Positions 8,900 through 48,827 of a DNA stretch of 64,000 nucleotides are shown piece after piece. The stretch is from Trichoplax adhaerens (taxonomy: Eukaryota; Animalia; Placozoa). A model generated the notes under the pieces. The model worked only from the letters and a program-made list of their open reading frames with translations, was not told where the DNA came from and made no database searches. The first letter of the stretch is position 1. Each line of letters opens with the position of its first letter. The DNA lies in assembly GCF_000150275.1 (NCBI RefSeq), contig NW_002060945.1, forward strand, positions 8,572,011-8,636,010, written 5' to 3'. A program made the translations under genes and the position numbers.

Positions 8900-11573
8900 C
8901 TACGCTATACATTTGCCTTCAAGCCAATATGTATCAATCGTAGCCTTTCCGTTATCCTATTTCAACACAACAGAATAAATTAAATAGACTAAAATTACTT
9001 AAAATAAAGTTAAAATAATAATAGACGTCTTCCAATGTGAACGCGTTTATATTTTTATATCACATTGATAAGGTAATTACGCTTATATAAATTGTAACTC
9101 TTACCAAAATGGGAATAGATTCATGATAACGCATATCATAGTCGCCATAGCTAGATAAGGCTTCATAAGTTGATTTACTAATATTTATCTTCATAGCTAA
9201 GAGGAACATACAGGTAATAATGAAGCAATTTCGCAGAATTGACATCAATTAGCAAACGAATCATCCAAATATTATATACTATTATAATTATCAGTGATAA
9301 TTTTGATTTGACTGTAAGTTAATATCAATCATGATAATCATAGATTATTATCATAGTAAAAATCAAGATTAGCAGTTAACACGCACTGGGTAGTAAAGTA
9401 CCTGAACATTTTTTCTAGTTTAAGTAAATTTCAATTTGAACTTACGACTTCCTCGTGCTTCCATCCTAGTTGCTACAGATACTGTCTGACCGAATAAGCA
9501 ATAGCGCGGCATTTTAATCCCAACTACACCAGCAACGCACGATCCTGCCGTATCAAAAAGTATATAGAAATAATTACAACATTGACCAATATAATCAACA
9601 TCTGACTTAAACATTAGTAAAAAAATTAATTCATGGTATCAAATAATCATGCACGTAGCTAAATAATAAGTAAATGGTAATGTAACTATTAAATAAAAAC
9701 AGAACTTTAAGTTGAAATATTCTTCATTATTCGCCAGTTATTAACAAGTTATGGTAAGAACAAATTAAATTATTATTTGACAGCATCATAAAATATTAAA
9801 ATTTCCTGTATTATTATGAATATCATCGGTGTAAACACAGAATTGCCTCTTAATGTAGTTCGCTACTAGATTTTTCAAGTATCTAATTTTGAATACAAAC
9901 ACTGTCGGTACCAAGAATAACAAAATGTGAACTGATATAACGTTCTCACCAGTATGGATACCAATTCTCATTTGCAATTGTTCAACAGGAACATGGGGAA
10001 TGTTAATTCGTCGCATATTAGTCAAGATTTCCATTGCCATTTGGGCAATTTCTACCGCGTGCTTTTTCTCTGCTAATCGCTTCGGAACACCAGAGGCTAC
10101 CATATACGCATCGCCAATAGTTTCCGTTTTATAGACATGATAACGATCGACAATACGATCAAATAGCGTATAAATAGCATTTAGCATATAAACTACTCGT
10201 ACCGGTGTAGTGGAATGACATATGTGTGTAAAGCCAACAATATCACTAATATATATAGTAACATCATCGAAAGCTTCAGCAATGACGACTTTACCCAATT
10301 TTAATTGTTCAGCAACAGCTGAAGGTAATAACTGATGTAACAATTGATCAGTACGATATCGGTGATATTCAATATCACTCAATCGGAGTCCAAAATAGGA
10401 CACTTGTCTCTGAATTTGTCGTTGCATACCAGTAGTCATTATAATAACTAAAACTCCAACAATTAAAGCAGCAGCCAAAACTAAAATTTGCTGACGATTA
10501 ACAACTTTAATGTCACGTACAAGTTTGTCAGTATCATTATGGATATTTTCTCTTAATTGATAGCTTAAAGTAGTTAACATCTGTAAGTATTGGGTGGTGC
10601 TATTTTTCCAATACGATAAAGACTGAACATTAGGTTGATGATGTCGATTGAACATAATTTTAGTAATTTCTTGGTTAATTATTTCTACAACAGTATTATT
10701 TAAGTGGTTTTGAAAATAATTGTTTATGAAAGAAGATAAACGCCCCGCTGATGTCAAGTATAACTGATGACGACTATTATGATATATAAAAATGAAGACT
10801 TCACTTGAATATAAATAACCGCGTGAATAATATAAATTACCAATAGCTCGACTTAGAGTAGCCTCATCTTCAGCTAAAATTAAAAAATGAATAGCTATAA
10901 GATCCTGCCAATCGAGCAATGTTGATGTAGTTTGTATCAGACGAACTTTATGTTCAGATAACAGTCCTACTGTACGGGCATAAAATTCAACTTCAAGTAA
11001 AACATTAGTTAATTTATTATCCGTTTTATTACGATGATCTTCAATTCTATGATGAATGATTTCATCTTCATCATCATCATGATCATCCAAGCTATCTTTA
11101 TGATGCTCATCCTCTTCATGGCCATTTTCAAATTTAGAATCAGTAATATTACGTTTATCCAGTACATTACTGTCATAGATATTACTAGAATAATTCGAAT
11201 TGATATACGTAATAGTAGCAGTTAACTCACTCAAGATAGCTTGAATTTTATCCACATGATCAAATAGGCTATCCACTGCTTTACGAATTGAATTAATTTG
11301 TGCAATATCTTTAGTAGAACGTCGAAAATTAGTCGCGGATAAAACAATAAAAAAGACACAGATCAACGTGGTAAATAAAATAATAATCATACTCTGCCGT
11401 CTGCTACGTTTATACTGCGATGAATCATCCTTTAAATTTCCTCTGCCGCATAATCTATGCCAAAAGCCAAGTTGATCTCGGCTCTCCGTTAAATCATAGC
11501 TTTCAACGGTATCATACCTTGTTAGCATGCTTCTCCTTCTTCTACTCGGAATAGCTCTAGTTACGAAATTCAT
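8900..11573 (-). CDS. NIT-domain-like two-TM receptor guanylate cyclase, paralog 1, 623 aa; exons 11573-9950, 9544-9446, 9196-9105, 8956-8900
   Basis: Class III cyclase motifs [26 protein letters not shown]|[18 protein letters not shown] and TYWL, with the guanine-specifying E and C. Preceded by the LLHQLLP coiled coil. Two hydrophobic helices flank a ~280-aa helical domain. All introns are GT-AG and in frame (1624+99+92+57 = 1872 nt). The NIT call comes from motif recognition, not an HMM search. Confidence 0.92.
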
Positions 11574-46800: not shown

Positions 46801-48827
46801 GAATAGGGAGTTTAGACCCTGTAGCGTATGTAATAGATGACTTGTTGGAAGTTGAAAAGTTAAAAATATATATTATGCATACGCGATAACCTAATTAATT
46901 AAATGATTGGAGCTATTTTAATATGCATGAGTTTATGTCAAAAATCCACTTATTACTAGTTTTTATCGTCGATGATTAGCTAATTTGATCGATTGATTGA
47001 TTACCGCATAATTTAATGTCTTAAATTATCGCCATGAAATTCACACTCTATAGTAAGAAATTAAATTTACATCGTCAGAATAAATAACTTACCTGTATGG
47101 ATGCCGATCCTTAATTTAATTTGTCTACCTTCCATATGCGGTACTTTAATATTTTCAATTTCAGCCCTGATATCCAATGCCATATTAGCAATTTCTTTGG
47201 CATGAAAGCGTCCTCCCGTCCGCTTTGGAACACCCGAAACAACCATATAAGCATCACCAATAGTTTCAATTTTATAGACATCGTGATTATCAATTTTTCG
47301 ATCGAACAGAGTATATAACGCATTCAGCATATAAACTACTTGGATAGCAGTGCTACTATGGCAAATATTAGTGAAGCCAACGACATCACTAAAATAAATA
47401 GTAGCATCGTCGAAGGATTCAGCGTGAACAGCACGCCCTAATTTAAGTTGTTCAGCAACAGACGGTGGCAACAACTGATATAATAAGTCATCGGTGCGTG
47501 ATTTCTCATATTCTAAATCATCGCTTTTAATGACTAATTTAGCCACATACTTTTGAATACGACGTATAAATTTAGCCACTAATAAAAATGAAAACGGACT
47601 TATGACTAATACTAAAATCAGCAAAACAATTGCTGTGGTCTGACTAACTTGAGCTAATAACTTGACTCTCTTTAATCGAGTAGCAAGGTAAGAGTTGAGA
47701 TGAAATTGCAAACTTGCTAAATAATGCTGGTAGCTGGCTTGATAGCTAAACCAAATGACCTGCCCCCCATGGTATTCTACCCGTGTAGTATATTTATTAT
47801 AAAGTTGGAGTTGAGTTAAGTGAAATTGATTGATGATAGTGCAATTATATGGAAGATAAAGGTTGCAATAACGATGAATATAACTTGATAAAGCTTGTGC
47901 ACGCTTTAGATAGAGTTGTTGTTCATAGTAGGCTTGCATAAAACGGATTTGATATGAAGGCGGCAAGGTATAATTATACCACATTAGTTGACCATAGTAT
48001 CGGACTAATTCTAATTTATCTAATGCATGAATTAGCCACTGATTTGCGACCAATTCTTGCCATAATAAATCTTCTTTGGAATGATAATTCGATTCTATTA
48101 GCCAATCGAATATTAACTGAATAAGTCGATGATAATGACTAGCCGTTGCTAATTCCAGTAAATCTGAAGTATTTTGTAGACTAAGATTGGAATCAACTTG
48201 AAGACGGTAAATCACTAATTGTCGATAAAGTTCATCTTTTCTACGTTGAAATTGACCGTTGAGAGACTTATTGGTGAATTGGATCGATTGTTGAAATTGT
48301 TGATCAGTTTGATTGCGAACTTGCATCAGTTGTATGGTTAATGTATTATTTGTTATGGTTGTTGTATTAGTTAATAATGTCTTAATGGAATCATTCTGCA
48401 TTGGGATTCCGCTCGATGAGACGAATTGAGTATGATAAAATAATATCTGTAACGTCGACCAACGTTCATGTTGTAATTTTTCAATAATTTTAGCATAACT
48501 TGAACATAATGCAATATCATCGGATAATAAATCAACATTAGCAATTTCTTTAACTGATATAAGATACAATGAACCTGTCTGAATAATGATAGCTAATAGC
48601 AATAAAGATAAAGTAACGGACATTTTAATAGCCATGGCTTTTCGACCACGACGAGTGACCAAATCAGACGGATAACAGTTACAATTGATATCGTGAAGGC
48701 ATGATGTCTTCTCTTCATCTTTCTTCATATCGGCCATGATGATCAACTTACCTTTCTCCGTCTTTTTAAATTTATAGCTACCTGATGGTGATATCAATGA
48801 GGCCGTTGTACAATTAATTTTAGCCAT
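37899..48827 (-). CDS. NIT-domain-like two-TM receptor guanylate cyclase, paralog 3, 664 aa; exons 48827-47093, 41620-41522, 38309-38218, 37967-37899
   Basis: Motifs [27 protein letters not shown]|[41 protein letters not shown] and [13 protein letters not shown]-like [13 protein letters not shown] introns fall at the same positions as in the paralogs (1735+99+92+69 = 1995 nt). Confidence 0.92.

Follow-up and report, generated by a model that had tools for sequence, protein, structure and literature searches.

Guanylate cyclases that carry a NIT domain, a nitrate/nitrite-sensing module of bacterial type, are known as NIT-GCs; they are present in many bilaterians and in corals, and sensing of nitrite/nitrate or nitric oxide (NO) has been proposed for them (Moroz et al. 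2020, Sci Rep, PMC7400543). The same survey counted 12 NIT-domain cyclases in Trichoplax, with the NIT domain between two transmembrane segments (TMs) and followed by the cyclase (TM-NIT-TM-cyclase), and reported high nitrite in this animal. Functional work on Platynereis dumerilii has shown that its NIT-GC1 raises cyclic GMP (cGMP) upon addition of an NO donor, and that the NIT domain is required for this response (Jokura et al., eLife 2023; bioRxiv 10.1101/2023.08.02.551600). The 64,000-nucleotide stretch of Trichoplax adhaerens DNA analysed here (the window; contig NW_002060945.1, positions 8,572,011 to 8,636,010) contains three genes of this family in a row. These are, very probably, three known NIT-GC paralogs that arose by old tandem duplications and encode two-pass receptors, which we infer to work as ligand-gated, cGMP-producing dimers. 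The window adds no new family and no new gene; the one-sided degeneracy of the catalytic residues in the trio is a modest new point, and an old clade of three genes combines this residue loss with the most diverged sensors in the genome.

The three genes, numbered 1 to 3 by position, are the catalogued T. adhaerens NIT domain GCY 6, GCY 5, and GCY 7 of Moroz et al. (2020), and are not new. Their N-terminal peptides are identical to the corresponding entries in supplementary file 4 of PMC7400543 (the H2 entries of that supplement differ slightly), and their gene identifiers, TriadITZ_003615, 003616, and 003617, are consecutive. Among named database entries, those that match gene 1 best come from Placozoa sp. 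H4: its GCY 6 is 72% identical and its GCY 5 33%. A preliminary description of this DNA, made from its letters, had recognised the family as already published; the literature names even these exact genes. In the searchable text of PMC7400543, neither the tandem array nor the deviation at the catalytic residues is taken up, and no mention of dimers or catalytic residues was found in that paper or in 10.1101/2023.08.02.551600.

The window is AT-rich (~30% G+C) and contains three long minus-strand open reading frames (ORFs) of 586-595 codons, each of which stops right after the peptide IGIHTG, at a GT donor. The downstream exons were located by a motif scan and by tblastn with short queries, and their borders were read directly from the sequence. 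The joined exons served for frame checks and domain identities, while the database searches used single exons or the exon-1 parts. The result is three co-oriented paralogs on the minus strand, all complete and with four coding exons each, in which every exon border is GT-AG and the frame is open through to the stop. Exon 2 (99 nt) and exon 3 (92 nt) have identical sizes and phases across the three genes. Three co-oriented paralogs had also been announced in the preliminary description, and the ends that it gave are exact: 8900 is the stop of gene 1 and 48827 the ATG of gene 3. For gene 1, the joins of the C-terminal exons are consistent with the protein of the H4 ortholog P0002. Intron 1 of gene 3 (41621-47092) is ~5.5 kb long, compared with ~400 bp in genes 1 and 2, and contains no ORF of at least 70 amino acids (aa). 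When the three genes were searched against the window with tblastn, neither a fourth copy nor a pseudogene was found. A Pfam search of the ORFs of at least 50 aa at 11.7-19 kb and 26-37.8 kb gave no match, so there is no recognisable intervening gene in these intervals.

Transcription and splicing can be followed directly for gene 2 (GCY 5). Contigs of four runs from four studies were aligned over 19000-24900, for this gene only; one of the four runs is recorded as RNA, and the other three cover about the exonic share of the stretch. All three introns are confirmed by spliced contigs in each of the four runs. The joints fall at 19140/19707, 19799/22422, and 22518/22946, and their CT..AC ends correspond to GT..AG on the minus strand. 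In three runs, loose contig ends at 24581 map uniquely to 26169-26198, which reveals a non-coding 5' exon for gene 2. Within this piece of the 5' untranslated region (UTR) lies an in-frame stop, and the first ATG beyond the stop, at 24559, gives the N-terminus MRIHFLD..., the same as in the published model. A TTG-started version of the ORF, which would carry an extra N-terminal hydrophobic stretch, is ruled out by the splice-in at 24581 together with the position of the ATG after the UTR stop. Among 20 listed strain differences in the coding sequence of gene 2, 11 are synonymous and 9 nonsynonymous, and all four of those listed in the part encoding the signalling helix and cyclase are synonymous. 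Small as the sample is, it points to purifying selection on gene 2; between species, at 66-72% protein identity, synonymous sites are saturated. Contigs of three runs also touch ~20-130 bases of the gene 2 cyclase part, at 23100-23227, and continue into unrelated sequence on both sides. These are probably transcripts of another cyclase paralog with a shared conserved stretch, or chimeric contigs.

The same layout recurs in all three proteins. A predicted cytosolic N-terminus is followed by TM1 and by a helical sensor of ~280-306 aa; after TM2 come a signalling helix and a class III cyclase. Pfam Guanylate_cyc (PF00211) is strong in each of them (exon 1, 108-120 bits; exon 2, 41-46 bits), while NIT (PF08376; cut-off 24.9 bits) passes in genes 1 and 2 only (scores in Table 1). 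HNOBA matches just its last ~40 profile positions (176-216), which correspond to the signalling helix, and no HNOB, kinase, or ANF_receptor match up to E 1 is seen in any of the three genes. Kyte-Doolittle hydropathy with a 19-residue window gives exactly two TM peaks per protein, with heights of 2.3-3.0. Lys and Arg are more frequent before TM1 than after it, and the N-x-S/T sequons lie mostly between the TMs (6 of 7, 6 of 7, and 9 of 10 in genes 1, 2, and 3). This charge pattern and the placement of the sequons fit a cytosolic N-terminus and an outward-facing sensor. Thus, the arrangement of TM, sensor, TM, coiled coil, and cyclase that had been proposed from the letters of the DNA, with neither a kinase-homology nor an H-NOX domain, is borne out by Pfam and hydropathy. 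The accompanying picture of diverged sensors and conserved cyclases holds for pairwise identity (~25% among the sensors and ~56-58% among the cytosolic parts), but it breaks down at three catalytic residues that deviate in this trio only.

In the sensor of GCY 7, helix 1 is followed by an insert of ~30 aa. A phmmer search of this sensor against 1.84 billion representatives finds a single ortholog-like protein, the same one that is returned by a word-indexed search. A profile of nine full Trichoplax sensors, when searched against the PDB, matches only the NIT domain of the antiterminator NasR (4AKK; E 4.6e-8). An AlphaFold2 model of the GCY 7 sensor, built on a 17-row alignment, is all helical, with a mean pLDDT of 78.3. 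Foldseek places NasR 4AKK on top for this model (TM-score 0.56-0.58) and nothing else above 0.33, and VIA-align superposes 265 of 306 residues on 4AKK with a Z of 23.3 and an rmsd of 3.3 A; the runner-up, a single four-helix bundle, reaches Z 11.7. All three sensors are thus best described as NIT domains, by profile for GCY 6 and GCY 5, and by predicted fold and clade position for GCY 7. This is the identity that had been suggested at the outset, with a hidden Markov model (HMM) match in two genes and a fold match in the third; a NIT match and two predicted TMs are present in every one of the three.

In a census of the family by six-frame searches of the genome, the NIT domain was detected at 9 places, and cyclase exons of the NIT-GC type in 11 genes. 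Four of these genes form a tandem array on contig C1405, two lie on C1376, one each on C1403 and C1406, and three in the window. One of the two on C1376 (C1376:1-3000) is broken by the contig start and a run of N, and is likely the 12th family member, incompletely assembled. The other Trichoplax genes have NIT scores of 57-117 bits, whereas genes 1 and 2 of the window score 40-42 and gene 3 is missed at genome scale. Judged by these scores, the trio has the most diverged NIT domains in the genome. All Trichoplax NIT-GC genes have in common a phase-1 intron directly after (H/S)(T/S)G, which indicates duplication at the DNA level. A maximum-likelihood tree was built on the exon-1 parts and rooted with five ordinary receptor guanylate cyclases (GCs). 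The NIT-GC side is split from these outgroups at 100/100, the three genes form one clade with their orthologs from other placozoans (100/99), GCY 7 is sister to GCY 5 plus GCY 6 (98/95), and the trio clade nests with the other Trichoplax NIT-GCs (94/96), within a placozoan group of NIT-GCs. The stems of the trio clade are long, at ~1-1.4 changes per site. Because orthologs of each copy occur in other placozoans, the trio is an old tandem triplication that predates the H1/H4 split. The local expansion that had been supposed is consequently correct as regards tandem duplication, but it is ancient rather than recent.

Within the catalytic centre, both metal-binding Asp residues (in SD(I/V)(V/C)GF and TIGDAY), the Arg of RIGIHTG, and the guanylate-type Glu/Cys pair (ETIGD, RYCLFG) are kept in all three proteins. 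The Glu/Cys pair predicts GTP as the substrate, and it rules out an adenylate-cyclase reading. (A single-exon cyclase on C1396, which was taken for comparison, is a membrane adenylyl cyclase with an AC_N match and not an NIT-GC.) The helix that completes the partner's site, canonically GDTVNTASRMES, is altered in the trio at its Asn and/or Arg. GCY 6 has Ser for the Asn and keeps the Arg, GCY 5 keeps the Asn and has Lys for the Arg, and GCY 7 has Thr and Lys. In addition, exon 3 canonically closes with a Lys, as ...(I/V/L)K just ahead of GKG; this residue is Leu in GCY 6, Leu in GCY 5, and Gln in GCY 7. The Asn/Arg/Lys triad therefore reads S/R/L in GCY 6, N/K/L in GCY 5, and T/K/Q in GCY 7, while all eight of the other Trichoplax paralogs read N, R, K, making the trio the sole deviants among 11. 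The H4 ortholog of GCY 5 again has N, K, L; that of GCY 6 has S, M, V, so that all three canonical residues are lost. Outside the placozoan clade, the nemertean Tubulanus polymorphus NIT-GC P0004 has Thr and Lys at the Asn and Arg positions and is without the KGKG Lys; such one-sided degeneration has apparently occurred on more than one occasion among NIT-GCs.

The positions can be related to a solved cyclase. Exon 2 gives an ungapped match to adenylyl cyclase IIC2 (1azs_B, chain 135-164), with the Asn and Arg at indices 156 and 160. Taking the 1azs_B construct to start at residue 870, as we presume, these would be N1025 and R1029 of IIC2. Yan et al. 1997 (as cited in PMC7384201) reported that adenylyl cyclase requires both residues for catalysis. 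The Arg is the transition-state residue and the Lys the gamma-phosphate contact, and both are lent by the other subunit (PMC7384201). A self-sufficient homodimer has the metal Asp and the Asn, Arg, and Lys in each chain, and the chains of the trio have the former together with an incomplete set of the latter. Since the residues lent to the partner's site have been lost in part (always the Lys, together with the Asn, the Arg, or both), low turnover would be expected of the trio as homodimers, with full activity only in a pair with a canonical NIT-GC. This pattern suggests either weak homodimers or heterodimer partners.

Of the explanations that depart from this, the one that survives best is that the trio are ordinary, perhaps slower, homodimeric NIT-GCs, in which the substitutions are tolerated and each protein is self-sufficient with its own specificity. 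We place this just short of an even chance. The genes are intact, spliced, and conserved since before the H1/H4 split, with guanylate specificity and metal residues in place; Lys can replace Arg in part; and one NIT-GC of another phylum, Platynereis NIT-GC1, works when it is expressed alone. However, the altered positions include the Asn and Arg that, on the cited report, adenylyl cyclase cannot do without, the gamma-phosphate Lys is absent in all three proteins, and eight of eight other paralogs retain N, R, and K.

The sensors also vary at the residues thought to form the ligand pocket, whose states were read from an alignment with the other paralogs and NasR. Helix 1 (LQxER) has the canonical Glu-Arg in GCY 5 and GCY 7 and E-L in GCY 6. 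Helix 5, which also has a canonical Glu-Arg, reads E-Q in GCY 5, S-R in GCY 6, and V-R in GCY 7. Thus, GCY 7 keeps both Arg residues, the helix-1 Arg is lost to Leu in GCY 6, and the helix-5 Arg is lost to Gln in GCY 5. The orthologs carry the same pocket states; in particular, the H4 ortholog of GCY 5 also has Gln at the helix-5 Arg. The helix-5 pair aligns with E175/R176 of NasR, residues predicted to be part of the lining of the nitrate pocket (PMC7496416). Because the sensors vary at these putative pocket Arg/Glu positions, their ligand preferences probably differ. The diversified specificities that had been suggested are consistent with such differences between the copies, but variation of this sort is common in the family and proves nothing.

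A further departure from the expected behaviour would be that these sensors no longer detect nitrogen oxyanions and that their NIT fold has been turned to other small ligands. This is doubtful, yet it deserves some weight. No other NIT domains in the genome score as low by HMM as those of the trio (20.7-42 bits, versus 57-117 for the rest), two members of the trio each lack one pocket Arg, and GCY 7 combines its insert with a single detectable homolog in the whole of the sequences searched. On the other side stand the retention of both Arg residues in GCY 7, the preservation of the NIT fold in the model of that same protein, and the high nitrite of Trichoplax (PMC7400543).

The catalytic residues allow a third alternative, which we consider unlikely, and slightly more so than a change of ligand. 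In this case, GCY 5, 6, and 7 would be obligate heterodimer partners that resemble the alpha subunit of soluble guanylate cyclase (sGC), supplying the metal half of the site, while a canonical NIT-GC supplies the Asn, Arg, and Lys. The second site would be degenerate and possibly a regulatory pocket, as in sGC alpha/beta and in membrane adenylyl cyclase C1/C2. In sGC alpha1 (6pas_A), the helix reads NVTLANK, with Thr and Lys at the same two positions, and KGKG is missing. By comparison of residues, the trio retains the metal-binding half and has degraded the partner-completing half, as sGC alpha subunits do. It is specifically the partner-completing residues that are lost, with both metal Asp, the phosphate Arg of RIGIHTG, and the Glu/Cys kept; the T..K pair of GCY 7 is that of the solved sGC alpha1; and the changes persist in the H4 orthologs while the rest of the domain is still ~56-58% identical. 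Against obligate pairing, the genome holds no beta-like partner that is without the metal Asp, and the loss is patchy, given that GCY 6 retains the Arg and GCY 5 the Asn. Moreover, the changes in nemertean P0004 are similar and independent, and the positions could equally be tolerant ones.

The fuller form of this idea is less likely still: that the trio are independently evolved 'alpha-type' receptor cyclase subunits, each with a diverged NIT sensor and each paired with a canonical NIT-GC, so that every dimer has one working and one degenerate site. If this were true, placozoans would assemble cGMP receptors as heterodimers in varying combinations, and a counterpart to sGC alpha/beta would have arisen within a membrane receptor family. 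Proteins that are weak alone and rescued in pairs would then provide a second independent example of symmetric cyclase dimers turning asymmetric.

Finally, it is very improbable that these are non-catalytic receptors or decaying genes that make no cGMP and serve as scaffolds or decoys, or are being lost: three catalytic positions deviate, the H4 ortholog of GCY 6 is without Asn, Arg, and Lys together, and the stems of the trio clade are long, but no frame is interrupted and the splice sites are conserved, contigs of four studies show GCY 5 to be transcribed and to be spliced correctly, its strain differences show a synonymous excess with no nonsynonymous change in the cyclase part, and the metal Asp and substrate pocket are strictly kept.

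Taken together, the evidence is best accommodated by two-pass NIT-GC receptors that work as ligand-gated dimers, for which topology, ligand, dimerisation mode, and activity may be pictured as follows. The double four-helix-bundle NIT domain would face outward and work as a dimer, with a small ligand bound at the junction of the two NIT bundles. Given the NIT fold, the nitrite levels in Trichoplax, and the Platynereis assay, this ligand would most likely be nitrite or nitrate, as oxyanions derived from NO, or else NO itself. Binding would induce a change that is relayed via TM2 and the signalling helix, so that the cyclase dimer makes cGMP.

Several points weigh against parts of this picture. 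The TMs are predicted from hydropathy as the single source, and the splicing of GCY 6 and GCY 7 from sequence logic, supplemented for GCY 6 by its ortholog. An exchange of Arg for Lys is conservative, and activity may be kept. No Trichoplax NIT-GC shows a complementary, beta-like loss of the metal Asp, which leaves no obvious dedicated partner. As to the sensor, the NasR pocket residues are themselves predictions (PMC7496416). Two Trichoplax paralogs that are otherwise canonical also lack one pocket Arg, as do some insect and other NIT-GCs; loss of a pocket Arg, being common in the family, may change little.

NIT-GCs, on which little work has been done, may give animals a heme-free means of sensing NO or its oxidation products, and placozoans, which are without neurons, carry one of the largest sets of these proteins. 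The features of the three genes are collected in Table 1.

Table 1. The three NIT-GC genes of the window and their parts (positions are those of the window; all features are on the minus strand)
Feature	Positions	Strand	Basis and remarks
Gene 1, NIT domain GCY 6 (EDV27242 / TriadITZ_003615)	8900..11573	-	623 aa; ORF, border reading, frame check
Gene 1 exons	11573-9950, 9544-9446, 9196-9105, 8956-8900 (stop included)	-	
Gene 1 TM1	11334-11390	-	Hydropathy
Gene 1 NIT sensor, 282 aa	10488..11333	-	Pfam NIT 41.5 bits; hydropathy
Gene 1 TM2	10431-10487	-	Hydropathy
Gene 1 exon 2, cyclase alpha4 region; GC-type Cys kept, canonical Asn to Ser	9446..9544	-	Guanylate_cyc positions 111-140
Gene 2, NIT domain GCY 5 (EDV27243 / TriadITZ_003616)	19058..24581	-	628 aa, ATG at 24559
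Gene 2 exons	24581-22948, 22520-22422, 19799-19708, 19141-19058	-	Joints in spliced contigs
Gene 2 non-coding 5' exon, 3' end	26169..26198	-	Spliced to 24581; unique match of loose contig ends
Gene 2 NIT sensor, 279 aa	23486..24322	-	Pfam NIT 42.1 bits
Gene 2 exon 2; canonical Arg to Lys	22422..22520	-	Motif comparison; exon confirmed by contigs
Gene 3, NIT domain GCY 7 (EDV27244 / TriadITZ_003617)	37899..48827	-	664 aa; ORF, tblastn, motif scan, frame and GT-AG check
Gene 3 exons	48827-47093, 41620-41522, 38309-38218, 37967-37899	-	
Gene 3 sensor, 306 aa, very diverged NIT (predicted)	47634..48551	-	Pfam NIT 20.7 bits, below cut-off
Gene 3 exon 2; Asn to Thr, Arg to Lys, pair as in sGC alpha1	41522..41620	-	Motif comparison

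The surroundings of the trio contain a few other features. Near the far end of the window, on the minus strand, a single ORF of 1137 codons (60563-63976), which starts 24 bases from the window end and may extend past it, encodes a highly charged coiled-coil protein. Pfam gives this protein nothing beyond a sub-threshold match to TMF_DNA_bd (21 bits), and the ORF accounts for the strong AT and GC skew at 60-64 kb. At the opposite end, tandem repeats at 193-1516 and 7725-8291 have periods of 209, 82/101, and 111 bp, with 2.7-6.7 copies and 77-96% matches. These arrays are downstream of gene 1, and the 111-bp array lies ~600 bp beyond its stop. Past the window, ~60-66 kb from its end and on the same contig and strand, several multi-exon Guanylate_cyc matches are found (C1412:8695482-8701825), which by their exon pattern belong to a gene type different from the NIT-GCs.

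Set beside the systems described so far, the trio coincides with GCY 6/5/7 of Moroz et al. (EDV27242-EDV27244), which are the same genes with no difference in identity. Platynereis NIT-GC1, with its NIT and guanylate cyclase domains, belongs to the same metazoan NIT-GC family and is the only member that has been functionally tested; it comes from a different phylum and a different clade than the trio. The NIT domain of Klebsiella oxytoca NasR (4AKK) resembles the sensors of the trio in its double four-helix bundle, as predicted for GCY 7, and in part in the motifs of helix 1 (LQxER) and helix 5 (ER), where GCY 6 and GCY 5 are each short of one of the two Arg residues. NasR, however, is cytosolic and has an ANTAR RNA-binding output, whereas in the trio the NIT domain sits between two TMs and would drive a cyclase. 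The natriuretic-peptide receptor and retinal GCs are the closest relatives of the cyclase domain and form the outgroup of the tree. They share the signalling helix and a class III cyclase with Glu/Cys, but they have an ANF-receptor ectodomain, a kinase-homology domain, and one TM, where the trio has neither domain and two TMs. As for sGC alpha1 (6pas_A, 6jt0_A), it is like the trio in keeping the metal Asp, Glu, and Cys and in having no KGKG Lys, and its NVTLANK stands against TVTLASK in GCY 7, with Thr and Lys replacing the canonical Asn and Arg in both. The trio differs from sGC alpha in that it is without H-NOX or PAS (no HNOB and no full HNOBA), is membrane-bound, and falls in the NIT-GC clade. 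Consequently, the likeness between the trio and sGC alpha is best viewed as convergent and confined to the active-site face.

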